A stretch of 64,000 bases of DNA, from assembly GCF_026571515.1 (NCBI RefSeq), contig NW_026861872.1, forward strand, positions 248,001-312,000, written 5' to 3'. The notes beneath the pieces are model-generated. The model was given only the letters and a program-made list of their open reading frames with translations, was not told where the DNA came from and made no database searches. The stretch is from Ruditapes philippinarum (lineage: Eukaryota). Position numbers and translations under genes: made by a program. This document shows, one piece after another, positions 32,201 to 64,000 of this stretch (positions within the stretch are counted from its first letter, which is position 1; every line of letters starts with the position of its first letter).

Positions 32201-35200
32201 TTCTCGACGCTGACACTTATGGGCGTGCAGCAACAACACCAGTTGCTGTTGTATCAATTTGCGTTTCTCTGGGTCTGCAGACTGCGGTTGAGTGGCAGCA
32301 GCCGGAGCGCCTGGAGCACCCGGTACACCAGTATGGGGCACTGGTTGAGTTTGTGGAACCTGTTGCTATAAAAGAAAAAAAATAATGTCCAACTTTAGTC
32401 TAAGTAAAATATTCTTAAATATTGGTAAGTATTAGCGGATCTCTTTCTTTAATACAAATTGTTGTGCAATCAAGTATTGCAAAAGAAGTGAAATACACAT
32501 CTTTATTAATTAGACACAATGGGAACAATGAATTTGTCTGCTCAAATAGGATTGAATATTAGTATAAGATTATTTCACTTCAAGATTCCTATCTAATTCT
32601 GACATTTGAAACCGCATTGCAATTTTTTCATATGATGAAAAGTACAGTCATGACAAAACTTAACAAAATATTAAAACATACACTTATTTGTATAATTTAT
32701 GCATCTAGCTAAGAACAATGCTCAGGTTTTGGATTATTTGGAATTGACTAGAAATGTAATTCTTTTTTTAATTTCTGCCATTTTCCTACAGTGATGCACA
32801 TTTTTGAAATGCATGCATGTATAATTAGATTAGATTTTAATCTAATGCTTTAAAGGGAAGACTTTAAAGAGAAATCCATGTACATATATCATCGAATAAT
32901 GCAGATTCTTGCTCTCATATCTCTACTTATTATTAAAATGTCATTTGATTTTAGTTATAGCTTATTTGTCTGTGCTTGCCACACCATGTTATAAAGTGTA
33001 AAAACGTGTTGTAATAATCGTTTTCTCAATTTCAACTACACCATAATGCATCTTGAAATAAGAGCTGCCAGAGAGGACAGCAGGCTCAACTAATTTTGGA
33101 CACGGAAAAAAAATGGAAAAAAAAATCAATCATGACATATATTTCTTGAAAATAAAACTTTTCAAATGTTTAATTTTTATACCACAAACTTTTCAAATGT
33201 TTAATTTTTATACCACATTTAAGTATCAGAGTAAGTGATAAATAAAAAATTAACATCAATTTCTGTGTTGTTATTGAAAGACAATAACCTTAAGTTTGAG
33301 GTTATGTCCCTAAAGGAACAAAATAATGACAAAAGGTAACACTTTTTAAACAAAATTCTACATTTGAAGAGAAGACAACTCTTGAAATACAGCTGTTACT
33401 AGAGTTTTGAATCATGTCATACATGTTTCCTATGAGGGCTCGAATTTTAACAAATGCTGATGGAAAAATTGACCATAAAAATTTCATGAGATGGTCATGA
33501 CAATAGCTCTGCTTTTCCATCAAACTTACATAGCTAAATATGAGCCGCGTCATGACAAAACCAACATAATGGGTTTGCGACCAGCATGGATTTAGACCAG
33601 CCTGCGCGTCCGCGCAGTCTGATCAGGATCCATGCTGTTCGCTATCAGTTTGTCTACTTGTTATAGGGTCTGTAAGCGAACAGCATAGATCCTGATCAGA
33701 CTGCGCGAATGCGCAGGCTGGTCTGGATCCATGCTGGTCGCAAACCCATTAAGTTGGTTTTGTTGTGACGCGGCTCATATGTTGTCTCAGTCCAAAGTGA
33801 AGACAATACTTGAAATATAGGTGATTTAGAATTCAGATCCTTGTCCAGTTGTCATACACAATTGTGTGTGTAAATAAGGAACATATATATAAATTTTGAA
33901 GTATGAGAACAAAACCATTTTAGTAAAAGTAAACAAAAGCTGTTCAAATGGGGAAATAATTCTTGACATAAGGTTTGACATTAAATTCATAGAAAATAAT
34001 CTAGGTTAAGAAAAAAACATTTTAATACATTTAAACTTTAATCAGAAATCTGAATGCGGCTTTATGTAGAACTTAGAAGAGTACACAGACTCTTATACTT
34101 CATTATGTTCAGCGGACAATTAATTATACTATAGCATATATGGATTTAATATGTATGTTTATGAATACAGTTAGTTTTATAGCAAAAACAATACAGTTAG
34201 TTCAAAATGTGTTTAAACATGAAGTCAACAAAGCAAGAAAAAAGAATAGCAAATGTGATAAAATTACATCTCGAAAGAAAATTTAGGAATACAAATGAAC
34301 AAAAAAATATGTATAAATAAATTATCTACTGCATGCAAAACAAAAATAATTTAATAAGTGACAGGCAGTACAAATTATGATGCTGTGGCAACTAATTATC
34401 AGTCTGAAAAAACTGAAAAAAATTCATTATTTTTCCTAAATTATTCATCAAAATTTTTATTCATAAATTTATCTTTATTCTAAGAAGTTTTGTTTCCAGT
34501 ATACATTTAACCTTCATCTACTTGAGAGAAGAACATACAATTAAAGAAGAGCTTATAAAAAGCATAATTAACAGTTCGCAAACACTTAAAGATAAAGCAG
34601 TGCAAGGTGAGGGTGAGGCAAGCTAGTACTTACAGTGTTAGGGTTATGGGCAGGCATGCTGTGCGGTGGTGGAGAGGACATAGACGAGAGTACGGTAGAG
34701 GGATTGTTGTTGTTTGTGTTTGTATTGTAGTTAGACGTGGGCACTGGTAGCTGATGCCCTGTACCCTGTACCTGATTATAGCTGGGGAACCCGCCACCTC
34801 CACCCAGTGGTCCATTAGGCTGAAATAAGACACCATGGATATAGATGGAAAACAAAAACTACTACAATTAAAGGCTAAAACTTCAGCTTGCTAAACTTAA
34901 TATCACCCTATATATAAATCCTTACAGTTAATAACTTTCACTGCTTACAAAAAAAAATCTACAAAAATTGTTGTTTGCAAGTCTTTATGATAAATATTAT
35001 ATTTGGATAATTCCTGTCTTAATAATTCAGGTTTCACGAAATAACAGAATCATGTTTAATTATTTAAGTTTATAAAATAAGCATCACAATAAGTTGCACC
35101 CTTATTCAGAATATATTAAAGTTTTAAACTTTAAAATATGATCTTTCAAAGATTAAGTTGAGCAAGCTACCTAACACAATTATAGGTCTACAAATAAAAG

Positions 35201-39969: not shown

Positions 39970-42900
39970 ACTACATAAACACCAGAGTAATAACCTATCA
40001 TAACTACCACAATAACAAAGGTGATACCGTCAGATAACTGCCCCAACCCCCAAAAAACCACCCGTCATCATAACTACCATACTCACCAAAGAAATTAGCT
40101 CATCATAATCCCCAATCAACAAAGTGACTCCGTCATCAAAAAAGACCCTACATTTTTTTGATAAAATGCCAAAACACCCGAGTAACTAAGAAAAGTTCAC
40201 CAAAGGTCATCATAATCTGCCCCAATTACCCAAAATAACTATCGTCATAATAACTGCCACAATCACCAAAGTAGCGATTGTCTTCATAACTGGCACATTC
40301 ACCAAAGTGACTACCGTCATCATTTCTACCACAGTCACCAAAGTAACTACCGTCATCATAACTACCACAATCACCAAAGTCACTACCGTCATGATTACTG
40401 CCACAATTACCAAAGTGACTACCGTCATCATAACTACCACAATCAACCAAAGTGACTACCGTCATCATAACTGCCACAATCATCAAAGTAACTATTGTTC
40501 TCATAATTACCACATTCACCAAAGTGACTACCGTCATCATCACTGGCACATTCACCAAAGTAACTACCGTCATCATAACCACCACAATTACCAAAGTGAC
40601 TTCCGTCATTATAACTGCCACAATCACCAAAGTAACTACTGTCGACATAACTACCACAATCACCAAAGTGACTACCGACATGATTACTGCAACAATTACC
40701 AAAGTGACTACTGGCATTATAATGCCACAATCAACAAAGTGACTGCCGTCATCATAACCGCCACATTCACCAAAGCAATTACCGTCATCATAACTACCAC
40801 AATTACCAAAGTAACTACCGTCATCATAACTACCACAATCACCAAAGTAACTACCGTCATCATAACTACCACAATCGCCAAAGTGACTACCGTCATCATA
40901 TCTGCCACATTCACCAAAGTAACTACCGTCATCATAACTACCGCAATCACCAAAGTGACTACCATCATCATAACTGCCACATTCACCAAAGTAACTACCG
41001 CCATCATAACTACCGCAATCACCAAAGTGACTACCGACATGATTACTGCCACAATTACCAAAGTGACTACCGTCATCATAACTGCAACATTCAATAAAGT
41101 AACTACCGTTATCATAACTACCGCACTCACCAAAGTGACAACCGTCATCATATCTGCGACATTCACCAAAGTGACTACTGTCATCATAACTACCACAATC
41201 AACCAAAGTGACTACCGTTATCATAACTGCCACAATCACCAAAGGAACTATTGTTTTCATAATAATCGCATTCACCAAAGTGACTACCGCGATCATAACT
41301 AGCACAATCATCAAAGTAACTACCGTCATCATAACTACCACATTCACCAAAGTAACTATTGCTTACATAATAACCACATTCACCAAAGTAACTACAGTCA
41401 TCATAACCGCCAAAATTACCAAAGTAACTATTATTTTCTTAACTACCACATTCACCAAAGTCCGTCATCATAACTGCCACATTCCCCCAAGTAACAACCT
41501 TCATCATAACTACCACATTCACCAAAGTAACTGCCGTCATCATAACTACCACATTCACCAAAATAACTGCCGTCATCATAACTACCACATTCACCAAAGT
41601 AACTATTGTTTACATAATAACCACATTCACCAGAGAAACTACCGTCATCATAAATACCACATTCACTAAATTATAACCGTCATCATAACTAACACAATCA
41701 CAAAAGTAACTACCGTCATCATAACTGCCACAATCCCCAAAGTAATTACTGTCATCTTTTCTACCACAATAACAAAAGTAACTCCCGCCATCAAAACTGC
41801 CACAATTACCAAAGTAACTATTGTTTTCTTAACTGCCACAATCACCAAAGTGACTACCGTCATCATAACTACCACATTCACCAAAGTGACTACCGTCATC
41901 ATAACTGCCAAAAATCCCCAAAGTAATTACTTTCATCTTTTCTACAACAATAACAAAAGTAACTCCCGCCATCAAAACTGCCACAATTACCAAAGTAACT
42001 ATTGTTTTCTTAACTGCCACATTCACCAAAGTGACTACCGTCATCATAACTACCACATTCACCAAAGTGACTACCGTCATCATAACTACCTCATTCACCA
42101 AAGTGACTACCGTCATCATAACTGCCAAAATCCCCAAAGTAATTACTGTCATCTTTTCTACCACAATAACAAAAGTAACTCCCGCCATCAAAACTGCCAC
42201 AATTACCAAAGTAACTATTGTTTTCTTAACTGCCACATTCACCAAAGTGACTACCGTCATCATAACTACCACATTCACCAAAGTGACTACCGTCATCATA
42301 ACTACCACATTCACCAAAGTGACTACCGTCATCATAAGTACCTCATACACCAAAGTACCTACCTTATGATAATGCCCAAAATCACTAAAGTGACTGCCGT
42401 CATCATAACTGCCAAAATCACCAAAATAACTACCGTCATCAATTTTACCACAATCACCAAAGTAACTACCGTCATCATAACTGCCAGAATCATCAAAGTA
42501 CCTACCGTCATCATAACTATCACAATCACCAAAGTAACTTTCGTCATCATGACTTTCACAATTACCAAAGTAATTACTGTCATCATTACTACCACAATCA
42601 AAAAAGTAACTACCGTCATCATAACCATCTCAATCACCAAAGTAACTACCGTCATCATAACTGCCAGAATCATCAAAGTAACTACCGTCATCATAACATT
42701 CACAATAACCAAAGTAACTACCGTCATCATTACTATCACACTATCAAAAATACTAACGTCATGATAACTACCACAATCAAATAAGTAACTACCGTCATCA
42801 TAACTACCACAATTACCAAAGTGACTACCGTCATCATAACTTTAGCAATTACCAAAGGTAATTACTGTCATCATAACTGCCACATTCACCAAAGTAACTA

Positions 42901-45900
42901 CCGTCGTCATAACAAGCACAATCAACAAAGTGACTACGTCATTATAACTGCCCGATTCACCAAAGTGACTACCGTCATCATAACTACCACAATCAACAAA
43001 GTGACTACCGTCATCATAACTGCCACATTCACCAAAGTAACTACCGTCATCAAAACTACCGCAATCACCAAAGTGACTACCGTTATCATAACTGCCACAT
43101 TCACCAAAGTAACTACCGTCATCATAACTACCACAATCAACAAAGTGACTACCGTCATCATACTGCCACATTCACCAAAGTAACTACCGCCATCAAAACT
43201 GTCACAATTACCAAAGTTACTATTGCTTTCTTAACTACCACATTTACCAAAGTGACTACCGTCATCATAACTACTGTCATCATAACTACCACAATAACCA
43301 AAGTGACTACCGACATCATAACTACAAAAATCAACAAAGTAATTACCGTCATCATAACTACCACATTTACCAAAGTACCTACCGTCATGATAATGCCCAA
43401 ATCACCTAAGTGAGTGCCGTCATCATAACTGCCAAAATCACCAAGGTAATTACCGTCATCATTACTACCACAATCACCAAAATTAACTTCCGTAATCATT
43501 ACTGCCTTATTCACCAAAGTGTCTACCGTCATCATAACTACCACAATCACCAAAGTAACTACCGTCATCATACTGCAATAATCACCAAAGTAATTACCGT
43601 CATCATTTCTACCACAATCACCAAAGAAACTTCCGTAATCATTACTTCCTTATTCACCAAAGTGACTACCGTCATCATAACTGCCAAAATCAACAAAGTG
43701 TCTACCGTCATCATTTCTACCACAATCATCAAAGTAACTACCGTCATCATACTGCAATAATCACCAAAGTAATGACAGTCATCATTTCTACCACAATCAC
43801 CAAAGTAACTACCGCCATCAAAACTGCAACAATGTCCAAAGTAACTATTGTTTTCTTAACTTTCACATTCACCAAAGTGACCACCGTCATCATAACTACC
43901 AAATTCATCAAAGTATCTACCGTCATGATTATGCCCAAATCACCTAAGTGACTGCCGTCATCATAACTGCCAAAATCACCAAGGTAATTACCGTCATCAT
44001 TTCTACCACAATCACCAAAGTGATTGCCGTCATCATAACTACCACAATCACCAACGTAACTTCCGTAATCATTACTGCCTTATTCACCAAAGTGACTACC
44101 GTCATCATTACTGCCACAATCACCAAAGTAACTGCCGTCATCATAACTTACACAATTACCAAAGTAATTGCTGTCATCATTACTACCACAATCATCAAAG
44201 TAACTACCGTCATCATAACTTTCGCAATTACCAAAGTAATTACTGTACTGTCATCATTTCTGCCTCAATTACCAAAGTAGCTACCGTCATCATAACTACC
44301 ATAATCACCAAAGTAACTACCGTCATCATAACTTTCGCAATTACCAAAGTAATTACTGTCATCAATTCTGCACATTCTACAAAGCAACTACCATCACCAT
44401 TCACCAAAGTACTACCTTCATGATAACTGCCACAATCACCAAAGTAACTATCGTCTTCATAACTAGTACAATCACCAAAGTGACTACCGTCATCATAACT
44501 GCCACAATTCACCAAAGTGACTACCGTCACCATAACTACCTCAGTCACCAAACTACTATTTTCATGATAACTGTCACAATCACCAGAGTAACTACTGTCA
44601 TCATAACTACCGCAATCACCAAAGTGACTACCGTCATGATTACTGCCTCAATTACCAAAGTGACTACCGTCATCATAACTACCACAATCAACCAAAGTGA
44701 CTACCGTCATCATAACTACCACAATCAATCAAAGTGACTACCGTCATCATAACTGCCACAATCATCAAAGTAACTATTGTTTTCATAATTACCACATTCA
44801 CCAAAGTGACTACCGTCATTATCACTGGCACATTCACCAAAGTAACTACCGTCATCATAATAACAACAATTACCAAAGTGACTTTCGTCATTATAACTAC
44901 ACCAGTCACCAAAGTACTTCAGTCATGATAACTGCCATAATCACCAAAGTAACTACTGTCAACATAACTACCACAATCAACCTAAGTGACTCTTATCATC
45001 ATAACTGCCACAATCACCAAAGTAACGATTGTCTTCATAACTGCCACACTCACCAAAATAACAACCGTCATCATAACTTTCGCAATTACCAAAGTAATTA
45101 CTGTCATCATTTCTGCCTCAATTACCAAAGTAACTACCGTCATCATAACTACCATAATCACCAAAGTAACTACCGTTATCATAACTACAACAATTACCAA
45201 AGTAAATACAGTCGTCATTATAACTGCTACAATCACAAAAGTAACTACCGTTATCATAACTACCACATTCACCACAGTAATTACTGTCATCATAACTGCC
45301 ACAATCACCAAAGTAACTACCGTCATCATAACTACCACAATCACCAAAGTAACTACCGTCATCATAACTAGCACAATCAACAAAGTAACTACCGTCATCA
45401 AAACTACCCCAGTCACCAAAGTACTACCTTCATGATAACTGCCATATCACCAAAGTAACTACTGTCATCATAACTACCACAATCAACCTAAGTGACTCAT
45501 CATAACTGCAACAATCACCAAAGTGACTTAAGTCATCATAACTGCCACAATGACCAAAGTGACTTCCGTCATCATTTCTGCCCCAATCACTTTAGTGACT
45601 ACCGTCATGATAACTTCCACATTCACCAAAGTGACTACCGTCATGATAACTACCACAATTACTAAAGTGACTTCCGTCATCATTTCTGCCCCAATCACCA
45701 AAGTAACTACTGTCATTTTAACTGCCACAATCACCAAAGTAACTACCGTCATCATAACTGCCACAATGACCAAAGTGACTTCCGTCATCATTTCTGCCCT
45801 AATCACAATAGTGACTACCGTCATGATAACTACCACATTCACCAAAGTGACTCTTATCATCATAACTACCACAATCATCAAAGTAACTTCCGTCATCATA

Positions 45901-46095
45901 TCTGCCACATTCACCAAAGTGACTACCGTCATCATAACTACCACAATTACCAAAGTAACTTCCGTCATCATAACTACCACACTTACCAAAGTGACTACCG
46001 TCAACATAACTACCACAATCACCAAAGTAATTACCGTCACAATATCTGCAATACACATCACAGTAACTGCCACACTCATCACAGTTACTACCATC
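39970..46095. repeat. 36-bp minisatellite array, roughly 170 units
   Basis: Consensus ACCAAAGT(A/G)ACTACCGTCATCATAACT(A/G)CCACA(A/T)TC; explains the many overlapping 12-aa-period ORFs. Confidence 0.97.
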
Positions 46096-46319: not shown

Positions 46320-46905
46320 AATATCATCATTATTATTATCATCATCAATATCATCATCAACATCACACATCATCATCATCATCATCATCATCACTTCGTC
46401 ATAACCACCCCCAGCATCACCACATTCATCATTATCATCATCATCACCTAGCATCATCATCATTATCATCAATCACCATCACCACCATTCATCATCATCA
46501 TAATAGTCATCATCATCACCCTGCCGCCTCCATCATTAATATCGTCGTCCTAATCTTCCCCCTCTTCTTCCTTCTTTCTTCTTCTTTCATCAATCATCAT
46601 CATCATCATCACCATCAATCATCATCATCACCCACTGTCTTCAATAACCACCACTACTGGCATCAATCATCATCATCATCACTGTCTTCATAAACCACCA
46701 CTACTGGCATCATCATCATCATCACCACCACCACTGTCTTCATAACCACCACTACTGGCATCATCATCATCATCACCACCACTGTCTTCATAACCACCAC
46801 TACTGGCATCATCATCATCATCATCATCATCACTGTCGTCATAACCACAACCACCACCACCAGCAGCAGCTCCATCGCCATCATTATAATCAGCAGCAGC
46901 AGTAG
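46320..46905. repeat. (CAT)n/(CAC)n compound microsatellite with a ~50-bp higher-order unit
   Basis: Runs of CATCATCAT; repeated CACTGTCTTCATAACCACCACTACTGGCATC at ~46633-46810. Confidence 0.9.
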
Positions 46906-50612: not shown

Positions 50613-53600
50613 TCAGTAAAACATAGCATAACCTTTCTCCAAGACTTTACCATGTTTAAAAAGTCTAACGGCGGGCCAAACAATATACTCGTGCTGATGA
50701 CCGTGTTCCTGAAAGTTCCGGAAGAGGTATCTTAGTTCTTCCTCGTTATTCACTTCAAACTGGAACACCATTGGTGGATTTTGTACACACATGAACCACG
50801 AGATCTCTATGCACTTTGCGGTATAAACGTCAACATTTTCTTCATCGATTGGGACATTTTTATAAATTATGTTATGTCTTTTCAACAGGGTCTTCATATG
50901 TTTCTCGAAAAAATTCTGAAAAAAAAAAAGAATTCCTGAAGTAGTTCAAATGATTAACTTACTAATTAAAGGTTCGCTGACCGCAAGGTCAAAGATTACC
51001 ACAGATCGGACATAAATAGGTCATACATGTATAAATAAGAAAAAATAAATTGAACCAGAGGTTATTAACCTTTTCACCAGGCCATCCTACACAATTGTAC
51101 AGTCTGATTAGGCTCTATACGGTTGACAGTTCATATTTAGTATTTTGATATTGAAATGCATTAAAATGAAAATGGATTGTTCCAAATTAAAAATAGAGCA
51201 ACTAATAAGATTAAGTTTTGTCTAACGTGGCTAGGTATTTGTAGTATATAACTTTGAACACTAATAGGAAATCGTCCTAATTGCTCTACAGCACTTCACT
51301 TAATCTTTTCATTTATATAAGGAAGTTTTACAGTAAAAACAACCTATCAAAATAATTTAACTCGGATTATTACGTTAGCAATAATACAAAAGAATAAAAT
51401 AAAAATGATAAAAACAAAACAAACTATACCTGTTTCAAATATTTAAGAGATATACTTGCATACTGTCTTCTGAATTCTTGCAGAATTTCACTGTCTGGAA
51501 ACTCAGCGTTTACTTTCTGAAATATAAAAAATATGCACATACATTTGAGCCGTGTCACGACAAAACCAACATAATGGTTTTGCGACCAGCATGGATCCAG
51601 ACCAGCCTGCGCATCCGCGCAGTCTGATCAGGATCCATGCTGTTCGCTTACAAACCCTATAACAAGTGAGAAACTGATAGCGAACAGCATGGATCCTGAT
51701 CAGACTGCGCGCATGCGCAGGCTGGTCTGGATCCATGCTGGTCGCAAACCCATTATGTTGGTTTTGTCATGACACGGCTCATTTGTCAATAAAACTAAGT
51801 ACATCTTAAATACTAACTTTAGGTATTGTGTCAATCTCATAATGTAAAAGTATTTGCATTTGTTTACATCAAGAAATAAAGTTGCTTATGTACGTTTAAT
51901 TCTTCTCTTCGAGTTTGATATACATTTTTTCCTGCAAAATTCATATATTGATCCACAAATTTATGTATGCTTGATCCACTGGAAATATGGATTTATGCAC
52001 TTACATATGATCCAATCAATGTATTGATTTTTGCACCTATATTTGATCCACTCAATGTTTTTATTCATGCACCTATATTTGATACACAGAATGTATTCAA
52101 GTTTCAAGTTTCAAGTTTTATTAAATATATCTCAGTATGTAATATACATAGACATGAGAACAATTTCTAATAATACACGTAATCACAGAGGACAACTTTT
52201 ATTTAAGATCTTGAAGGAATTTATACGAAAGTGAAAAAAAAATCTATTCCGTAATTAATGATATTGATACCAGTCCATTCTAGTCATACTCATGGATTTT
52301 AATAATGCGCGACCCGGTCTGTAGATATTTTAATCAGGTTATTTGATTGGTCGATTGATTTACACACCGTGTAAACCCATTAATTATGTCATGTAGGTCA
52401 GTCAGGTTATGCAGAAATTGTGTCATTGTGTCAGGTTGAGGTTAATATCATGGAAAACGTATTAATTTATGCACTTACATTTGGTCCGGTCAATATAATG
52501 ATTCATATACCAACAAATGATCGATTTATGCCACTCAATGTATTGATTTATGCACCTACATTATTTTTGATCAACTCGAAATATTGATTTGTGCACTTAT
52601 ATCTAATCCACTCAACATAATGATTTATATACTTACATTTGATCCACTCACAATCTTCAAAGCTTCTCGTTGCATTAGAACTAATTGTGACTCGGCAATT
52701 GGCCAGCAAACCTGCTCATATGATACCTTAAAATGTACAAAATATTTAATTGACAAATGTCCTAACAGAAATATAATATTTATATTGAGATGCACGTGAT
52801 TTACATGAAATATGCTTTACAGCATTAAAAATGTTAACGACAACATAACAATAAACTGATTGAATAAATAGTCTCATTACATGTTACATCATTTTCTACA
52901 CAATTTTTATTGATAATCAAATTCATTAGATAGAAATCATGATTGCACATACTTGTAAGATACGTCTGAGGAAGCTGATGGTGTCGCCTTTATCATTAGA
53001 AATTCGACAATGCTCAAATGCTGCCCGCCAGTCTGTTTTAAAAACACTTGCTAACTCTTCGACAATCTCTTTTGGACTGCAAAACTCACGAAGCCTTGTC
53101 ATTTTCTCGTTTAATCTGAAATTTTAATTACCATTTTTACTACAAAGTGCTGACTTATGCCAAGTGATTTTATTGTTTTGGCATTATGATAACATGTTAA
53201 TCAAGTTTTAGAAATTAAAATTAAAAGATATGTCATCGTATGGAAATAATAATGAATCAACGAATTCGCAAAACGTTACAAGGAAAGTGGGATATTTCGC
53301 TAAATGACATAAGAATAATCGTATTGTTTATTGTTTAGTATTGCATTTATTTTTATCTTATTTCTACAATACTAACATAGTGTTCCGGTCAGTATAGGCT
53401 GACATATTGTCCATCGATGTTCTACTGCTATATTTCGAAGTTCCTCTGACGTCATTTGGTTTGCGTGACGTACTATGACCAGCGTCTTTAAACTTCTGGG
53501 GCTCCAATAATTTCACACCAAGCTGCTGAGACTGGTGGAAATTTAGTTTTGGAATCTTTGTCTCTGGTTTTGTATCTTGATTATTCTTGAACTAAAATAA

Positions 53601-54472
53601 AAATGTGACAACAATTAATGTTGTCCACTGGGAGCATATCTGTGCCAATGCGGGATGCATCTGCATCTTTCTTAGGTCTATATCTGGTAATATGGGGCTA
53701 GTCCGAGGTGTCTGGCTCTGGAATTTGTTTATAAAATGAAATGGTTTCTGATTTATAACCGAAATGAATGGTTTATCGCTTGGAAATAAGTAATGCTATC
53801 ATCTGAAGAGGTGTTGTGTAACGGATGAGTATACACCCACCTTCTTTATTAACGGTGTGATGTCTGAGTCCACTGCGTCCGGGGATATTTACTCAGAGGT
53901 CTAGGTGTAGAACGCTTTTATATCGTTTGTAAGCCCATGTTCCCAGCCAAGGCATTTTTTTAAAATGCATTTACATCTTTCTATGATGAACTATATATTT
54001 TTGTAGGACTAACAATATATGTGTAGTACGCTAACTAATGAAAATCAGCAACATATATAAATCTACATTATCTTATCTACCATTTTCTACATGCATACAC
54101 AATCGTTAATAAGAACATAAAATACCCAATACAAAATATGAAAACATATTTTGATGAAATATTGCTTACCAAAAAAGGCTTGATAATTGCTATAGAAACC
54201 AATTTTCTCAGTTTGTTGTATTGTGCCTCTGCTTCTATACCGACACGCTTTGTATAGTACCAACTTTTAGATTGCAAAGAATCTGCAGTTGCTTCTAAAA
54301 ACTTAGTTATTTTACTCTCATCAACGTATGTTTCGTGTTTTAATGGTTTAACGTACTTCCAAACATGCTGCCATTCACCAGAAGCTAGATAAACCAGATC
54401 CACAGTAATAAGATGGTATCTCTCGGTGAAAACATACAGAAATACCATATCCAACGCAGTCTTTTCCGCCAT
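50613..54472 (-). CDS. Mieap/SPATA18-type C-terminal-domain protein, paralogue A (~381 aa)
   Basis: Exons 54170-54472, 53377-53591, 52953-53115, 52652-52726, 51430-51516 and 50613-50915 join into an open frame (phases 0,2,0,0,0). Motifs: SPKEIVEELASVFKTDWRAAF, VSYEQVCWPIAESQL, YTAKCIEISWFMCVQNPPMVF, YIVWPAVRLFKHGKVLEKG. Confidence 0.8.
51546..51781. mobile_element. Palindromic MITE, copy 2 (opposite orientation), in an intron of paralogue A
   Basis: Same arms as copy 1; the central spacer is the reverse complement of that in copy 1. Confidence 0.9.
51945..52650. repeat. Degenerate ~33-36-bp intronic minisatellite in two blocks (~51945-52095 and ~52460-52650)
   Basis: Units like ATTTGATCCACTCAATGTATTGATTTATGCACCTAT. 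Confidence 0.7.
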
Positions 54473-56743
54473 TTTGAATTTATCAAAATAATTACTCGTT
54501 TACTTACGACAATTATTAGTAAACAAAAGTAAAATCAATCAATTTTTAAAAATCAATCGATTTGTTCATTACTTTAATTTTAACATGTAAGACTTGATAA
54601 GAGTGAAAATAGATCGGGCGACATACACTTAATACAAACGAAAGAAATACTTTCGACAAGGCTCATTTAACATTGTACATTGTATTAAGATATTTCTCAA
54701 CCATTTTCTTATTGATATAATGTTTAAGTCATTGTTCTGGTTATTGACAATTGTTAATTTTTAAAACGCCTCTTGTTACAGATTAGCAGCAGTACAGAAA
54801 ATGGTCAATTAATTTAAATGGACTTGCAGGCTTGCTTTGTGACATACATGTATTATAATATAATATGATATTACATAATATTACGAGGTTTGTCCGAGAT
54901 TTTCGGAGAGAGTCTGCTTTTTGAAATTGCTATCATCTCTTTAAAGATATATTTATAATCAATTAGTTTTGATAATATTGTGATAAATGTCATACAATAT
55001 GATCCGGTTATCAGAAAATAAGCGTTAACATAATCATAGCAACACGTTTCCAACCCGTTCACAATAAAAACAAAAACGTGCATATATCTACGTTTAACAC
55101 GGCTTATCGTTGATTTTCGTAGAAATACATTTAACATTTATAGATCTGCATACAAAGTACTAACATCACTGTCTGAAACCCGGTGCACAAAAACTGAACT
55201 TACGTCATTTATAAATGACGTCGCCTACGCACCTACTATGCGTAGTATCGGCCAGTGCGAACACACTTTCTGTTAAAGTGGCGTGCGACTCATTTGTTAC
55301 ATGTCTCAATATAAAAGTCTTTACCAAATGTAGACACGATCTTCTTTGTTTCCGACATCAACTCCCCCCCCACACTGCTGAGTTGAATGTCCCCCGCAAA
55401 CGGGACTTCATTTACGGGAACAAACCATGTGAATATCAAGTTTTGTAATGCCTTAGAAAAATCATCAACAGAAACGCTAAAATAACCAAACAAAGCAAAG
55501 CAAAAGGGGAGAAGGGAGAGAAACTGAAGGAAAAGTACTGATGGTCACATTAGAATTATAACAAAACTATTTAGACGACAATATTTTTAAATTAAAGTAG
55601 ACCATCCGCATAAAACGATCTTTTTGTAAACTTATATCTTATAAGTAAAAACTGCTTACTAAAATACACATTTGGTTTTAGTGTTTCAAAAATGCAATAA
55701 TGTAATTGAATAATTTGTTTCGTATATCAGGTCTTCGCTTAGAAAGTTCCGCAAAATCTCATGAATGACGAGATTAAAAGTTTTAAGAGGCGGCAAACAG
55801 TACTCGTATAATCACAAAATGAGTGAAATTTGGTATGATATAATGCACTAATTGGTAACAAGGCATGAAGATACTTGATTAATTTGTCGCTATTATGCAA
55901 TTCGTTTAAATTATATGCTGACGTGGAGGCCACTAGTGAATGTGTTGATTTGTAGTGATAGCAAAATGAGCAGGATTTTGTAACCGTTTACTCTTTTAAT
56001 GTTCTAATTTTTGAATTATATTAAGATGTTATTGCACTTGTTGACTATATAAACGAATAGTTCATAGAAAAGTATGAATTCAGTCTTCAAATTTCTGTGA
56101 GAACGCTCGTATTTCATATGAATCAAAGCAGTAATAATAGATGTGTAGGTTACTTGAAAAAATGGTAGATTATTACTTTGCTCAACGTTCTATATAACTC
56201 AAATGCCGATTTAATCAAATATAACTAGTGGCTAAACATGTCTTTGTGTATGTCTAAAAGTTAACCATCAATTTGTATAAGCTAAATGATTTCCTTTAAT
56301 ATAAACGATAACGTTGAAATAGTGCTAAAACATCTATTTACATGACATATGAGACGCTATTTTTCTCCGCTCCTGCACACTTTAGAGCATTGTACAGCGT
56401 TCAAGATATAACTGCATATTACACTATTATTAGACATAACAATTAAATTTTGTTAACTATGATTTCCGGCAATTTGACAATTCAAATGGTGACATGAAAC
56501 ACAGAAAGGGCATAACGTCATCTAATGAATATACAACTAATATGTGATGTCAGGAGCCATTTCCACTTCTTGACTTATAAAATACAATTTAAAATGTGAT
56601 AAGATAGTCATGTGCCTTTTTAGATATTTTAGTATTATAACAATGGTTTATAACTCACACTGGCGAGAACAGAAACATTACATAAAGTGTTCTACAAGAA
56701 CATAAGATTAAAACTTTCTGAAAACAAAAGCAGACGTTATATA

Positions 56744-56746
<3 letters not shown>

Positions 56747-56779
<33 letters not shown>
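56747..56779. repeat. (CAA)11 microsatellite
   Basis: Direct read; lies ~250 bp downstream of the paralogue B stop codon. Confidence 0.95.
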
Positions 56780-57031
56780 GCGACCAGAATACACTATCAG
56801 CAAAAAGCACAAATATTTAAATATCATTCTCCTCCGCCGTTCTCAAAAATGTTATATCTGTTCTATTTCAGTAAAATGTTATATAGATGGTTGTCCGTTC
56901 AATTTTAGTAAAATGTTATATTGATGTTTGTCAATTCCACTTGGAATCAACTATATATAAATTGTTATCTTACTTCAAATTTGTTATCAATTTAGTAAAA
57001 ACTGTGATTATAAGAGTTACTTCTATGGTCA

Positions 57032-60000
57032 CTATCTGAATTCGGCTATACCCTGTGCAACAACTGCATCATGTTTAGAACGCCTTATTGCAGGCCACAC
57101 AATATAGTGTATACAATGGCCTTCATTCTTGTATGGCTTAAATATTTCTAAAAGATCTTCAAGCAACATAGGTCTTGAATCATAGTCAAACACCATCGGT
57201 GGACTTCGCGTGAGCATGAACCACGACAGTTCCACACACTTGGCCGAGTATAGATTGACGACATTTTCATCGTCCATTCCATTATGGTACACAATGCTGT
57301 GTTCCTTCTGTAGCTCCTTTAGATGTCGTGACAAAAATTCCTAAAACATATACAGCATACATGAATTTTCTGTTATCATTTATTCAGTTTCGAAAATAAT
57401 CATTACTCTAAAATGAGAATCGTTTGTCAAGGTCCAGACGATTCTGTTTTTCAAAGTTCGATATGTATAAAATGAGTATAAAGAAATAATGGCATATAGT
57501 TTCATGTTAGAACAAGAAATTAACACTATAGAAGAACAAGAAATTAACACTATAGAAGTAGTTTACGAGCCATTCACATCAATTTACTGTAAAAGAAAAA
57601 AGTAAAACACTTTTTCTGTTGTGTAAATTATTCATAAAGTACTAAGTTTGGGTGAAGATTTTCTTCAGGAACGTGTACTAGAAATCATAATAATATTTTA
57701 CCGTCTTTAATTTCTGTAATTTCTCCTGAATTGATACTGTATCATCTGTTAAAGCTACCGTCGTCTCAATAGCTTTTCTCACATCACTTGCTGATATCTG
57801 TTTTACATACATGTATAGGCATAATTATTTTTAGAGCATTAATCACAATATTCATACTATTTTAAACATTTCTATTTCAGAGATACAAGAAACAACGAAT
57901 TATGATATATATTATGATACATCTGCCTGTGTTAGAGAAATAAAGTGAGATAAGTATTATAGACAAACCAACCATGATGACGACTGATTGAAGATATGTC
58001 TTTTTTATCACAAACTGGCAATTTAATTTGTAAATGAAATTATTGTTAATATAACTTTTCTATAGAAAGTTATTTGATATAACATGTTAGAAGAATGATA
58101 CAATTCTGCCAGTTTATCATTATTGAATACTAAGTAAAACTAATGATCTTCATGAATTGTGCAGAGTAATAAACATTTCCATCTATATTCATACTTTAAT
58201 GCTCAATATTATTAATAAATAAGTCTACCTTCAGAATTTCACCGAGGAAGTCAATGGTGTTTTTAATGCCATTAGAAGGTTTGCATCCAGTCAGTGCCGT
58301 GTAAGCATGATTCCAGTCTGTGTCATATACATGATTTAGCTCTGTTATTATTTCATCTTGTTTGCATTTGAAGCTTATACGAGTCATCTGCTCCCTTACT
58401 CTGAAATAGATTTTATTTTTATATTTCAATTCTACGCAAAATTCTGTTATGTTGATCAATTCTGGATAACATGTGTCTGCGGATTACAAGATCTTACGTG
58501 TTGTACATAGCTAAATGTGAAAAATGAATAAGGACCTACATGTTTCATCAGAACTTCAAATGCATAAATATGATTGACAGCTATTAAAGGTTTATAACTA
58601 AAAGCTGCTGAAATAATATTGACGAGTTAACAATGTCATGGAAAATGTGAACGATACTTACATCTTTGTAGATTCTATTGTGTAAGGCATGTCGTCTTCT
58701 CTATTGTCAGTTTTCTCTTTGCTTTTACTATCATTTTCCAATTTCACTCCTGTTGATGCATTAAGTTCTTGCGCATTGGTACTACCACTGTGTTTCTCTG
58801 AAATTTCGTTCGCGACGAAATCATTTTCATCTTTCTGTCCTTTAGTATCTTTACTTTCATTTGTTTCTTTGTCTGGTTCTGCCAATTTAAAGCCAGATTC
58901 GTCAGTATGACTAGCTGTATCTGCAGTCTTATCTTCTTGATTTATCTCTTTAAAAATATCATTATTGTCTGACGCACCTTTATTTTTATTTTCTTTTTGG
59001 AATTTACTGTCGCTACCATCGCCATCTTCTCTGTTAAAAATATTTCTATCTGATTTATTCAAAACTATATTTTCTTTGTCTTTTGCTTGACTATGCTCAG
59101 TGTTATCATCATTTTCTAAACTTTTAGGACAATCTGTTTCTGATGAGTCTGATTTATGATTCACAGACTTAGGTCCGCATCGACTGGAAGTTTCGTCTGA
59201 ATCATCTCTTTTACTTTTGTTATTTTTAACGTTCCCTTTGTCTTTTTTAGCCTCGATAGTTTTTCCATCGCCAGGTTTTGAATTCATATTTGCCGATTCC
59301 GTCTCATTGCTTTTAATTTTATTTGCGGTTGGCTTATCCTTTAATTCTTCTGCCTTCTCTTTCTTTAAAGCCGTTTTCTTTTCACTGTGCTCATTTTCAA
59401 CATGCCCTCCTGCATGATTAGTCAAAGGATTTTGTTTATTTATCTGTTTGTTTCGAAAGTTTTGTTTACGAATACCATTAGTGGTGGAAGCAGTAGCATG
59501 TTTTTTTTCTCGTTTTGTTGCCGAGCATTTGCCATGGTGTGCATCTTCTATGAATAGTGAAACCTGCAAATGATTTATATGTGATACTTTTTACCTCTTT
59601 ACAAGATTTGCAATCTATATATTACTCTGAGAATTATTTTGTTTTTGAGTTTCATTTCTATTTTATATTCTTTCAGCAAATGAATTTTCTCATTTAAATC
59701 CAAAATGCCTTCATCTAACATTAGTTATTTTTATACATGGGTTAGATGTATACAGTTTATAGCTAATAACTTACTTTAAAGTCATCAAGAAATGATGGTC
59801 GGATATAGCGCCTAATGTGTCTGTATTCATTATCAGCCTGCAAACAGATTCTGATCGCCGCACTCCAAGTACCATTTTCTAAACCGTCCTGAACTGCATC
59901 TAGGAAATTCGTAATTTTCTTTACATCCACACGTGCTAGATCCCGCAACTTTTTTACGAGATTCCATACATTGCGAAACTCATTTGACGCATTGAATAAT

Positions 60001-60077
60001 ATATCTTGGTTGATATTATTTGCATGATTGCTTTCTATACTATGAAATAAATATTCCATGCACGTTTCATTCTCCAT
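57032..60077 (-). CDS. Mieap/SPATA18-type C-terminal-domain protein, paralogue B (~593 aa, long K/E/N/D/S-rich linker)
   Basis: Exons 59775-60077, 58662-59563, 58229-58400, 57702-57797 and 57032-57340 join in frame. Motifs: ELNHVYDTDWNHAY, YSAKCVELSWFMLTRSPPMVF, YIVWPAIRRSKHDAVVAQGIA. One small phase-0 exon may be unrecognised. Confidence 0.8.
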
Positions 60078-61367
60078 GACTACAGCAATAATTTCAGTCT
60101 AAATTTTTTATGAAAAAATCTATTATTCAATCTACATTTCATAAAGAACTCTTGATTTTACCAAACGACCTAGATTGCATGCGTTTGATTCAACTAAAGT
60201 TATGTAGACTTTTTGCTTACTTGCAATTTAATCAGGTAATTAGATAGCTTATTTTGATATACTCTGACCTTTTAAATGGTTTAATAACAGACTTACTTCA
60301 CAGTTATTGCTAAAAGACAATGCCTTAGACTGCATTCTAGTCTTTAGTGGAGTCAAGTTACGTTTTTAAAAATACGAGTATTATGCGTACTCGTTTTGTC
60401 AAGTTAAGTCAAAGTAGATTTGATTGATTTTCAGACAGTTGATTTATAATAAGAAACTCTATATAACCAAGGTCATCGTCGTTTAACAAATGTCACATCG
60501 ACTCAGGTAAGATGTTTAAGGCACATTGTATAAGAATATATTGTATCTTTTCTACAACTCGTGCTCGTGAACTCAAAGAGGTGACTCTCTCTTTTATAAG
60601 ATGGACCCTGTCGATTTCTTGTTTATAAAACTGTGCCACTGTCGGATACAGTGTTCTTATAAAACCACCAAGTGACTGTATAACCAGCTGAAGTGCTATT
60701 TTGTTTTGGGTTAATCAGGGCCGGGTTATATATATTTTTTTCTCTTTCCATTGCCAATTATCAGCCTTTCTCTGTGTCTCAAACACTGGTTATGCCACCT
60801 TTTGATAACTTAGAAATGACCCAACTGTGGCAGCCTTAACAATAACTCAATGACAGACTTTAAGTATTGCTTCTTTTGACTTTAATCGAGTAAATTAAGT
60901 ATCTACCTATTACAAACATTTAAAGGTGTGAAGATGATGTATGACACTGACTTCTGATATGTAGGTACAGAAAATACCGATGATCTGAACATATCTATAA
61001 CTTTTATTTCGATTACGCATGTATAAATACAACAAATTAATTATGAAGAATGCTTGTTTAGAACGAAAAGATTGATAAAGTGGTATAACATATGCGTCTT
61101 GAAAATCGACGTTTTTTGCACAATTGTACTTAGTGACGAACACTTAGAAATATTCGCCATGCAATAATAGTCGTAATGTTACAAAGGTACAATTTGTCAA
61201 GATAGAATGGGTAAATTATATATGTATTTTTCCATAAAGTATAAAACAAATTCTTTTTCAGACTGTTACTAAGCATTTTCAATTAAGTTACAAAAATATA
61301 CGATTAATAAAATATCACATTTTCATTAAATGTTATAATACACTCGACATTCTCGTGACATATATCC

Positions 61368-64000
61368 TTATTCGCCTTGAGCGATTCCTTTGCATAAAAC
61401 AGGTCCATCCTTGTAAAGTCTCAACACTGGCCATATTAAGTACCTAATGAAACGTCCAGATTTGGAGAAAGGTTTATATAAACTATGGTCAAAGTCAATA
61501 TTAGTGGTAGGGTCAAAATTGTCAAAATGTAAAGGTGGATCTTGTATCGCCATTCTCCACGTGAAAACAACACACTGGCGACTGTAGTTGTCTACGTTGT
61601 CATCCTTTCTCACGCCGTACCGCCTGTGTATCACTGGTAACGTCTTTAATAGGAAGGTCTGAAAAAGGATAAAGATAAAATGACCACACATACAAACAGG
61701 CTTTTAATCTTTTATATCTCTCATGTATTTTAAACACAAACCACAATGAATGATTGTAATATGATAAGTTATTACATGAAACTTTTAAACATGGACCAAC
61801 TTTATTATCGCATTTCAATATTGTTTTACCAAATGGAGTTATAGCGAACAGTGATTGATAGATGTCTGTAATGTTGTTGGTTGAAATATGTGGTTTGATA
61901 ACGATATTTTAGTACTCACATCTTGTAACCGTTTTACTGACAGGTCAGATATTTCTTTTCGATACTGCAACATGTGTTTTCTGTTTCCAGTTTTGTTGAA
62001 AACATCTTTATCAAACTGTAAATTAATTATTAACGGATAATCTTCTACATGATAATCATGATCATCATGATTTTTCGTAACTTTCATCAATGAAAGACAT
62101 TAATCTTTTTTTTTAATATCGGTATAAAATTTTTATACATTACTTTTAAGAAAACAATGAAACAATATTTACATGTATATCGTTTTTAAATAAAATAAAA
62201 ACAATAAAAGACAAAGATTTTTATCCGCATGCACACGCTCGCCTAGAAATACACACTTAAATATTTATCCTTTTTGGTTCTACCTTAAAATATCAACGAA
62301 ATAAAGAATTGCTATCGTTTGCCTCAGTGAATAAAGGGGGATAATCTAATTGGAAAGACAGCAAAAATTCTACAATGGCTGTATAAATTATGAGTAAGTC
62401 AATTAAACCTTTGTGTATTTCCCATCTGAAACTATGTTGAGCACAGCATGTTCAAACTGTAATATTTGTCCTTCTGCCTCATCTAAACATTCTTTATAGG
62501 CTTCCTAAACAATAGAAATGAGCCACGCCATGACAAAACCCACATAACTGTATCATAAAATATTAAAGAGAAATGAAATTATTAGACGTAACGATACCGA
62601 TTTTTATATAACTATATGGTGAAAATTTAAAGAGAAATGAAATTATTAGACATAACGATAACGATGTTTATATAAATGTATGGTAAAAATAAAAAAGAGA
62701 AATGAAATTATTAGACATAACGATACCGATGTTTATATAACTGTATCATAAAATATTAAAGAGAAATGAAATTATTAGACATAGCGATACCGATGTTTAT
62801 ATAACTGCATGATAAAAATAAAAAAAAGAGAAATGAAATTATTATAAATTACTATACCACTAGAATGTAAAGTAAACATTCAATAGCCGTTTCTTCTATC
62901 ACAGCTGCACGTTTTATTGCCGTTAAGGCTTGCTGCCATTCATTATCGTACAAAGACTGATATGCCTCAACAATTCGTGAAGGTCGATTCGGATCAAATC
63001 TGTATGAATTAGCGTTGTTCTCATCACTATCATATTTCCTTTAAAATAATTGAATAAGAAAATAAATCTAAAAAGAGAATTAGACAATATAAAATATAAA
63101 AATGAGCATCTAACAAATATACTGCAATTTGGATTAAGAATCTTTTTTTAACCGCCTTTAAAATTCAATGTTAAGTATAAATTATGCCTACTCATATACT
63201 CATGTACTACATATTTGAATACTACATATCGTTTTCATATGTGATAATAATGTGATAGATTTCCGATCTAAATATCGGACGCATGTATAGTATAAATACT
63301 CCGGGAAAAGGAGTTAGATTATACGCTTATAAGTTTTGCAAATAAAAAGTTAAAACAACCTTATGTTTTTACCGTTCGGTTGCTGATTCAAGAGCTTCCT
63401 GTAGAGTTTTAGGTTTTTCATGAATCTGACTTGAATAGCTGCCTGGATATGCACTAGGATGCCGATTGGTAAGTGATTTATTGAGAAAAGTTGTCTTTTT
63501 GTCCGGGCCTTGCTCGTCGTCACCAGTTGTGTCTGATCTCCTTCCCACATGTCGCATTGAAATGGGCGATTGTAAAGTGTTTGACATTACGTTCTCTTTC
63601 AATATTGATACTTTTGAAGAGCCTGTCTCTGTTTTTCCTGCTTGGATATCCTGGTCTTGAAAAAGGTACCTATCTGGAGAACCTTCACTCCATGGCAGCG
63701 CAAGTTGACTACTTTCAATTACTTCTTTTTGTTTCCCATGTATTTGTGCATATCCTAATTTCTGTCAAGATATAAAAAAGACGTTACACAGTTTTTTGTG
63801 CCTCCTTTCAAACAAAGAATCATAGCTTTTTCTGAATGCAAATAAGAAATATATGAAAATATTATTGCAGTAAACATACATTATTATTCATTGATTTATT
63901 CATATGCATACCTGACTATGTCCTTGTAATTTCGTCCTGTTATTCATATATTCCTGGTATGCTTTCTGTGCACCATTTAGCTGATTTCTGGCCTGATGCC
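61368..64000 (-). CDS. Mieap/SPATA18-type C-terminal-domain protein, paralogue C (5' end beyond window)
   Basis: Exons 63912->64000, 63373-63761, 62858-63038, 62433(or 62409)-62504, 61920-62015 and 61368-61658. Typical family motifs DPNRPSRIVEAYQSLYDNEW, EAYKECLDEAEGQ, CVVFTWRMAIQDPPLHF, YLIWPVLRLYKDGPVLCKGIAQ. Confidence 0.85.
62545..62845. repeat. ~63-bp tandem repeat (~5 copies) preceded by a 30-bp MITE terminus
   Basis: AAAGAGAAATGAAATTATTAGACATAACGATACCGATGTTTATATAACTG repeated; TGAGCCACGCCATGACAAAACCCACATAA at 62519-62547. Confidence 0.85.

Follow-up and report, generated by a model that had tools for sequence, protein, structure and literature searches.

Three head-to-tail MIEAP-domain genes with a small helical head in the Manila clam

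What do three neighbouring genes of the Manila clam, Ruditapes philippinarum, encode when their last exons carry Mieap-type motifs and their first exons match no recognised family? The question arises in positions 50613 to 64000 of a 64,000-nucleotide (nt) stretch of the 1.41-Gb assembly (C10359:248001-312000), which is referred to here as the window and has a composition of about 32% G+C with no N. An earlier note on this DNA had read the three genes as a distinct and fast-evolving modular family. Our analysis identifies them as three head-to-tail, minus-strand protein-coding genes of the MIEAP-domain family that is expanded in bivalves. They are built on a common plan, in which a small four-helix head is followed by a disordered linker and a MIEAP domain, with a distantly related head in gene 3. 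Genes 1 and 2 go back to an old tandem duplication and, together with relatives in Mercenaria and Mactra, form a small subfamily that is so far found in Venerida only. The architecture is a new variant within a known, published MIEAP expansion, and it includes an undescribed N-terminal domain.

Gene models and transcripts

The plan is most firmly established in gene 2. This gene is RefSeq XP_060556594.1 ("uncharacterized protein LOC132717189", 593 amino acids (aa)), which threads exactly onto the DNA in five coding exons with phases 0 / 0-2 / 2-0 / 0-0 / 0 and GT-AG ends at every intron. Exon 1 (59775-60077, on the minus strand like all exons of the three genes) starts with the ATG at 60077, encodes the 101-aa N-domain and ends in a GTAAGT donor in phase 0. 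It is followed by a 902-nt linker exon (58662-59563, aa 102-401, phase 0 to 2) rich in K, N, E, S and D, and by the YxxDW exon (58229-58400, phase 2 to 0), which contains VYDTDW and is placed at the start of the MIEAP domain. A 96-nt helical exon (57702-57797, phase 0 to 0) precedes the last exon with its stop codon (57032-57340), which encodes the C-terminal part of the MIEAP domain as judged from threading and a match to Pfam family PF16026.

Transcripts were checked over 57010-63009 in four runs, namely X1 and X3 (Logan contigs from two studies) and X21 and X23 (raw RNA reads). Contigs of both X1 and X3 skip all four introns of gene 2 (59563|59775, 58400|58662, 57797|58229 and 57340|57702, with CT..AC ends), and thus have joints at both ends of exons 2, 3 and 4. 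They also skip three introns of gene 3 (61658|61920, 62015|62409 and 62504|62858), and contig depth in the intron bins is zero. Two contigs of 997 and 979 letters each cover the N exon and the linker exon of gene 2, and in these transcript-like contigs the N-domain exon is therefore spliced to the rest of the gene. The N exon of gene 2 has two matches in the genome, and those of its last exon are confined to the cluster copies and other paralogues; with no second copy of the exons in the assembly, no retrocopy of them was found there. Transcription and splicing of genes 2 and 3 agree with the models, and at least two of the three genes are expressed. Eighteen letters left unmatched at 60166 in one X3 contig were considered as a possible upstream exon and rejected, being an 8-letter insertion followed by colinear sequence.

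The transcript contigs come from other individuals, and their differences from the assembly hint at high polymorphism. Among the variants listed for 58914-60041, gene 2 has at least nine non-synonymous and at least six synonymous differences from the assembly, with eight of the nine non-synonymous changes in the linker. Divided by protein part, the listed variants are eight non-synonymous and three synonymous in the linker against one and three in the two folded parts, which are tiny numbers. In the last exon of gene 3 (61404-61596), at least seven non-synonymous and at least seven synonymous differences are listed.

Gene 3 was modelled with six open exons (1,335 nt) in the same phases as gene 2, the first of which crosses the end of the window. 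The 3' part of exon 1 lies at 63912-64000 (donor at 63912, phase 0), and a start codon (ATG) proposed beyond the window at 64193 (numbering continued; C10359:312193) gives a 94-aa helical head, as suggested by its open reading frame (ORF) and by profile-profile comparison. The proposed 389-nt linker exon (63373-63761, phase 0 to 2) was placed by splice sites and phase. The YxxDW exon (62858-63038, LYDNEW), again at the start of the MIEAP domain, has its 3' end fixed by the RNA joint 62504|62858 and its 5' end set by splice site and phase. Two 96-nt helical exons (62409-62504, and 61920-62015 with LQYRKEISDL) are each flanked by RNA joints in contigs of X1 and X3, so that gene 3 has two short helical exons between the YxxDW exon and the last exon where gene 2 has one (32 aa). 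The last exon with its stop codon (61368-61658) is supported by a PF16026 match and the RNA joint 61658|61920.

The intron of gene 3 at 62514-62858 contains a 64-bp tandem repeat of 4.9 copies that abuts the donor of the YxxDW exon. Within it, a short piece at 62514-62547 is covered very deeply by each of the four runs (a depth of up to 585 in contigs), with many loose ends, and is a fragment of an abundant, transcribed repeat.

The model of gene 1 was derived from the DNA itself and consists of five open exons with AG/GT sites and fitting phases, 1,071 nt in total, or 356 codons and a stop. Exon 1 (54170-54472) has an ATG at 54472, a 101-aa N-domain that is 29-30% identical to that of gene 2, and a GTAAGC donor in phase 0. 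A proposed 215-nt linker exon (53377-53591, phase 0 to 2) was recognised by splice sites, phase and polar composition. Exon 3 (52953-53115, phase 2 to 0) is proposed from homology to the YxxDW exon of gene 2 together with splice sites, and contains VFKTDW. A proposed 87-nt helical exon (51430-51516, phase 0 to 0), found by splice sites and phase, is the weakest part of the model, and the last exon with its stop codon (50613-50915) has a PF16026 match and an acceptor at 50915.

We regard it as very improbable that one or more of the genes is dead or mis-modelled, with gene 1 in particular being an unexpressed relic. Such a relic would be in keeping with the placing of exons 2 and 4 of gene 1 by splice sites and phase, with a transposon-like inverted repeat in its third intron and with the occurrence of its head in the collections searched only as ORF-style fragments, which read through into the intron. 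Against this, spliced transcripts exclude genes 2 and 3 as dead, and gene 1 itself keeps five open exons in fitting phases, a last exon scoring 31.6 bits to PF16026 and all 18 of the head columns that are invariant across seven sequences. Gene 1 thus appears intact by its sequence. The inverted-repeat element occupies 51427-51885 and has a second copy in the window at 33305-33851; the signature of its ORF recurs on contigs C5923 and C6225, which marks it as a common dispersed repeat of this genome.

In an all-against-all BLAST of stop-to-stop ORFs, the last exons of genes 1 and 2 were 44% identical over 100 aa (E 1e-28), their YxxDW exons 43% over 60 aa (E 8e-12) and their N exons 30% over 103 aa (E 2e-17), and the last exon of gene 3 was 30-31% identical to those of genes 1 and 2 (E 1e-13 to 1e-17). 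The N exons of genes 1 and 2 are each exactly 101 codons long, from the ATG to a GTAAG donor in phase 0. This likeness goes far beyond chance, and the three genes are true paralogues. The reading of the locus as three head-to-tail minus-strand genes on one exon plan thus stands, exactly for gene 2 and as open models with matching phases for genes 1 and 3; the latter two were searched exon by exon.

MIEAP domain, head and linker

All three genes end in a recognisable MIEAP domain. The Pfam family (PF16026) has 195 positions and a gathering cut-off of 27 bits, which was exceeded by each of the three last-exon ORFs (50613-50897, 57032-57334 and 61368-61691, minus strand) with 31.6, 38.1 and 34.6 bits, at positions of about 117-193; the last exon proper of gene 3 gave 35.1 bits. 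The motifs C-x4-W-x-M-x4-PP, Y[IL][VI]WPx[VIL]R and Vxx[KQ]G align in all three genes, which agrees with their earlier identification as Mieap-type, the motif list being drawn from that reader and the alignment made here rather than from a curated definition. Across eight aligned last exons, W40, P47, W82, P83 and G97 are invariant. The whole gene-2 protein matches PF16026 at positions 104-193 with 36.2 bits, while its last-exon ORF covers 117-193, and the orthologous proteins described below score 34.8 bits (Mercenaria) and 39.5 bits (Mactra).

The YxxDW exon had previously been treated as a separate helical exon. It is indeed present in each gene, but rather than a module of its own it is probably the first part of the Pfam MIEAP domain, because the gene 3 copy matches profile positions 1-42 (E 1.4e-3, 19.1 bits, under the cut-off when taken alone). 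The corresponding exon of gene 2 has no Pfam match alone, two YxxDW ORFs and the linker ORF likewise had no meaningful family match, and none of three short helical exons scanned matched MIEAP, in an exon-by-exon scan that lowers sensitivity. The domain would then be spread over three or four exons.

A different role for this domain was also considered. In a bivalve orthogroup study, Hsp70 (OG10, 1,096 genes) and MIEAP (OG24) are among the largest bivalve expansions and are discussed together (PMC8382680), which would fit a MIEAP domain acting as a GrpE-like nucleotide-exchange co-chaperone for the HSPA12-type Hsp70s expanded in bivalves, with the head selecting clients or sites. At its C-terminal end, the low-confidence structural model of gene 2 also shows long helices and then a beta hairpin. 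However, a profile of the eight last exons had no match among solved chains (best E 0.53, an NAD glycohydrolase) and found no GrpE there, and the window holds no Hsp70 gene, its neighbour being of the CBP/p300 type. We therefore consider a co-chaperone role distinctly unlikely.

The head is the only undescribed component of these proteins and is absent from Pfam. Neither residues 1-101 of the gene-2 protein nor the N exons of genes 1 and 2 match a Pfam family, so that the expected division between a C-terminal Pfam match and an unassigned N-terminus was found on both counts. AlphaFold2, run with a 7-row alignment, predicts the gene-2 head with confidence as an up-down four-helix bundle (mean predicted local distance difference test (pLDDT) 91.6, predicted template modelling score 0.85; helices at 6-15, 24-48, 52-68, 72-89 and 94-100). 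The same fold is seen in the model of the full-length protein, with a pLDDT of 84-97 for residues 1-105. The N-terminus is acidic (MENETCMEY...), unlike a mitochondrial presequence.

Known structures offered no close counterpart. In a Foldseek search against the PDB, none of 43 matches to the head reached E <= 0.001, and a wide structural search returned only generic bundles and no specific structural relative. The up-down four-helix bundles of TLNRD1/talin rod domains, cytochrome b562 and PsbQ are 4-6% identical in sequence to the head, and this similarity is no evidence of kinship or shared function with them; a talin/vinculin kinship was likewise rejected on the outcome of the wide search. 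A protein atlas search with the head gave a best score of 0.77, below the level of a lead. An origin of the head by internal duplication was not shown either, with hhalign aligning its two halves over 14 columns at 3.2% probability (P 0.014).

The head of gene 3 is considerably further removed. A hidden Markov model of five N-domains did not recognise gene 3 exon 1 (6.4 bits, E 0.71, rank 5 of 1,448 ORFs). In hhalign, the gene 3 head and the N-domain aligned over 73 colinear columns with a score of 31.2 and a probability of 70.6%, a score that none of 200 column shuffles reached (maximum 18.3), which suggests that the gene 3 head is a distant homologue of the N-domain. It joins the N-domain set only through this profile-profile comparison, and after inclusion in the profile. 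One paralogue of the gene 3 head is detectable (C5923:56018-56260), where it also heads a MIEAP gene.

Between head and MIEAP domain, the linker is predicted to be disordered. In the AlphaFold2 model of the full-length gene-2 protein, residues 110-400 have a pLDDT below 50 and no secondary structure, and hydrophobic residues make up 12% of the linker (12.3%) against 35% of the C-terminal part. The linker of gene 2 is highly charged (18% K+R, 20% D+E), and so has the character of a long polyampholyte. Linkers of the three species compared are 300-351 aa long, 12-19% hydrophobic and rich in K, N, E, S and D, with an identity of only about 28%, which makes them unalignable; with gene 1 included, lengths in genes 1 and 2 and the Mercenaria and Mactra relatives range from 71 to 351 aa, always polar and charged. 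The model contains no helix between residues 101 and 397, with no dedicated coiled-coil predictor having been run. For the gene-2 protein, AlphaFold2 and Pfam together thus bear out the proposed sequence of folded N-domain, disordered spacer and Mieap domain, and the model agrees that Mieap-type coiled coils are missing upstream of the MIEAP part.

Place in the bivalve MIEAP expansion

The MIEAP family is large in this genome. At least 143 matches were found (150 of 202 candidates were scored), three of them on this contig and no further copy in the window or the next 20 kb. According to Regan et al. (2021, PMC8382680), the largest MIEAP orthogroup, OG24, comprises 807 genes and averages 53.1 genes in each bivalve but 0.6 in other taxa, which makes this one of the largest gene expansions in bivalves. 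Like the trio, OG24 consists of tandemly arrayed, highly diverged bivalve MIEAP-domain genes, and membership of the trio in it is consistent with both domain and species, since R. philippinarum is mentioned in that study. OG24 is described there, as far as the accessible text goes, by Pfam/InterPro name only, without treatment of N-terminal architectures, and no N-terminal architecture of bivalve MIEAP proteins was described in the portions of the literature that were searched. The three genes are a branch of an expansion already published rather than the distinct family that had been proposed, and a short helical first exon is also seen in MIEAP genes of other clusters.

Match counts divide the three neighbours. 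The last exon of gene 3 has 119 genome matches at E <= 1e-8, many of them 41-48% identical, and is only 36% and 35% identical to genes 1 and 2 in this search. The last exon of gene 2 has eight matches at the same threshold, the best being gene 1 at 45%, so the gene 1/gene 2 pair is an outlier within the family. From these counts and identities, the three neighbours are an old, outlying pair and one mainstream family member. The proposal of tandem duplication with strong divergence therefore holds for genes 1 and 2, which are each other's nearest relatives, but not for the cluster as a single local burst, since gene 3 is closer to copies on other contigs.

Two other arrays were inspected. All five MIEAP genes of the array on C5923 (17462-63446, plus strand) start with an 86-92-aa helical exon with a phase-0 donor, and all five on C10372 (30665-62906, plus strand) start with a shorter helical exon, which in at least four cases is followed by coiled-coil-like exons (judged by eye). 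A retrotransposon pol-like run of ORFs was also seen at C5923:51877-54327 (by eye, unscanned). The best MIEAP match of the genome lies on C6225 (104566-104859, minus strand, 90.9 bits, profile positions 97-195), with a match to profile positions 2-56 at C6225:108108-108284 on the same strand, about 3.5 kb upstream. The exon just upstream within this gene (C6225:104566-109229, minus strand) looks coiled-coil-like by eye. This gene is probably the canonical Mieap/SPATA18 orthologue, although its first exon was not located. The three genes of the window score 28.6-35.9 bits in the same genome-wide search and are not the SPATA18 orthologue, because C6225 carries this much better, canonical-looking copy.

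These arrays raise the question of whether the head is new at all. It could be the diverged N-terminal stretch of about 91 residues of canonical Mieap/SPATA18, and correspond to the short helical first exons of other clam MIEAP genes, in which case the architecture would be ancestral and no new domain would be involved. All ten MIEAP genes inspected in C5923 and C10372 start with a short helical exon, and profile-profile scores of the N-domain against these first exons were 21.4 for C5923 (shuffle maximum 20.6) and 16.3 for C10372 (maximum 14.0), with none of 120 shuffles reaching either score. A study of human Mieap places intrinsically disordered regions (IDRs) at aa 92-311 and 499-538, which leaves an N-terminal stretch of similar size not called disordered (PMC10845071). 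However, hhalign assigns those comparisons probabilities of only 11% and 3%, and the alignment to C5923 lacks colinearity. No SPATA18-like protein was obtained from the N-domain profile at E <= 0.001 among 1.84 billion representatives, and no N-domain-like ORF occurs among the 544 ORFs in 30 kb around the C6225 gene, including about 20 kb upstream (best 5.4 bits, E 0.52). On balance, we hold an ancestral origin of the head to be unlikely.

By sequence, relatives of the N-domain came to light in venerid and mactrid clams only. A profile of two heads searched against 1,835,955,588 cluster representatives returned seven proteins at E <= 0.001, of which four are real relatives: two ORF-style pieces of genes 1 and 2, a fragment 109 aa long and a 625-aa protein of Mactra antiquata. 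The other three were set aside as internally repetitive proteins in which short pieces of the profile matched five to seven times. When the MIEAP part of gene 2 was used in a word-based search, one protein among 342 candidates was recovered, a 647-aa orthologue in Mercenaria mercenaria. The plan of head, linker and MIEAP domain is common to XP_060556594.1 (593 aa), M. mercenaria LOC123558968 (647 aa) and M. antiquata KAL4229699.1 (625 aa), all named only "uncharacterized" or "hypothetical" in databases and with no domain assigned to residues 1-101. A lineage look-up places Ruditapes (Veneridae) and Mactra (Mactridae) in Venerida, and Mercenaria also belongs to the Veneridae. The features of the gene-2 subfamily, a 101-aa head, linker and MIEAP domain in one transcript, are all present in gene 2 with RNA support, and the N exon of gene 1 matches the N-domain profile.

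Orthologous proteins are well conserved. The N-domains of Ruditapes and Mercenaria are 82% identical and those of Ruditapes and Mactra 54.5%, with corresponding values of 74% and 50% for the MIEAP parts. Because the Mactra protein groups with gene 2 (54.5% identity of the head, against 30% to gene 1), the duplication that gave rise to genes 1 and 2 would be older than the split of Veneridae and Mactridae, assuming roughly even rates. The description of the genes as fast-evolving does not suit the gene-1/gene-2 type, in which heads and MIEAP parts are conserved between genera and only the linker is unalignable. The divergence of the tandem copies thus reflects age, because the orthologous heads and MIEAP parts are well conserved.

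These identities also bear on the suggestion that the trio belongs to a fast-evolving immune or stress recognition family, in which tandem duplication would have diversified the head as a variable surface for recognition. In favour of it, the genes are arranged in tandem in a family of at least 143 copies, the heads of the three neighbours are only 20-30% identical to each other, and a mussel transcriptome atlas counts MIEAP with the Pfam domains that are over-represented among genes specific to the gill (PMC5549309). A diversified surface is, however, hard to reconcile with the conservation of orthologous heads across two venerid genera and to Mactra, or with a duplication of genes 1 and 2 that would predate the family split. 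The N-domain profile has only four matching places in the genome, so that no large, diversified repertoire of heads is detectable. A recognition family of this kind is improbable in our judgement.

Possible role and neighbouring sequence

Human Mieap/SPATA18, the p53-inducible mitochondria-eating protein, shares with the clam trio the C-terminal Pfam MIEAP domain and offers the closest guide to a possible role. Besides p53 induction, the canonical protein is characterised by mitochondrial localisation and cardiolipin-containing condensates. Its N-terminal half is hydrophilic, rich in IDRs and carries two coiled coils, its C-terminal half is hydrophobic and structured and is responsible for the interaction with phospholipids, and the two halves together build multi-phase, lipid-containing condensates (PMC10845071). 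Gene 2 likewise combines a hydrophilic, largely disordered upstream part with a more hydrophobic C-terminal part. In place of the two upstream coiled coils of human Mieap (PMC10845071), the gene-2 model has the four-helix head, and no helix between residues 101 and 397.

By analogy, the clam proteins could be bipartite scaffolds, a reading to which we give about an even chance. The MIEAP domain would serve as the conserved end that does the work and would bind lipid or a partner. The linker, which keeps its length and composition while its sequence drifts, may act as a flexible spacer that tethers and possibly promotes condensation. The head would replace the coiled coils of Mieap as a module that binds a partner or associates with itself, and so might decide where, or with what, the MIEAP end acts.

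Several points count against these interpretations. The label of X1 and X3 as RNA is a guess, their RNA nature being inferred from the intron-less contigs, and the raw-read runs X21 and X23 gave only 200 and 2 reads, mostly on the intronic repeat at 62514-62547; expression of the genes in X21 and X23 is low or tissue-limited. The collections searched contain no annotated full-length protein with the gene-1 N-domain. Proteins of the gene-2 type match PF16026 only at positions 104-193, 79-193 and 118-193, which is the last 60% or less of the MIEAP domain, and the gene-2 domain may be truncated or altered because of this partial coverage and its one 32-aa helical exon against the two of gene 3. 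The MIEAP part has a pLDDT of 36-67 in the full-length gene-2 model, a low confidence from which no statement on lipid binding is possible. The clam linkers are rich in K, E, D, N and S, whereas the human IDRs are rich in R and S (PMC10845071), and no functional experiment on any bivalve MIEAP protein appears in the portions of the literature that were searched.

A broader and more tentative idea, which we think is unlikely, is that of a combinatorial adaptor system, in which one MIEAP working end is directed to a place or partner by interchangeable N-terminal heads. If true, the clam-restricted four-helix bundle of the window, for which no relative outside these proteins is detectable, would be one type of head and the short helical hairpins with coiled coils of C10372 another. 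In that case the head would represent a genuinely new domain family born within heterodont clams, and the linker would tune condensate or tether length. In practical terms the gain is modest and consists of a refined annotation of "uncharacterized" RefSeq genes and a domain absent from Pfam, not a new kind of system. An old, conserved branch with a 593-aa protein, three separable parts and orthologues in three clam genera nevertheless provides a simple experimental handle on the family.

The remainder of the window contains a further gene and several repeats. On the 3' side of the MIEAP trio and on the same strand, about 9367-36565 (minus strand) holds exons of a CBP/p300-type acetyltransferase gene with matches to the Pfam families Creb_binding (70.3 bits), zf-TAZ (43.3 bits) and HAT_KAT11 (118.3 bits), and with Q-rich exons further up. 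Between this gene and the trio, a 36-bp unit is repeated about 162 times at 40206-46039 (5.8 kb, 78% matches). On the minus strand, the array reads as GSYDDGSHFGDC-like units, but with repeated shifts of frame and ORFs of at most 374 aa. Its appearance is that of a minisatellite and not of an intact gene made of repeats. The strand bias of this region is extreme, with a GC skew of about -0.54 over 40-46 kb, and the array is followed by ATC/CAT-rich repeats at 46323-46883.

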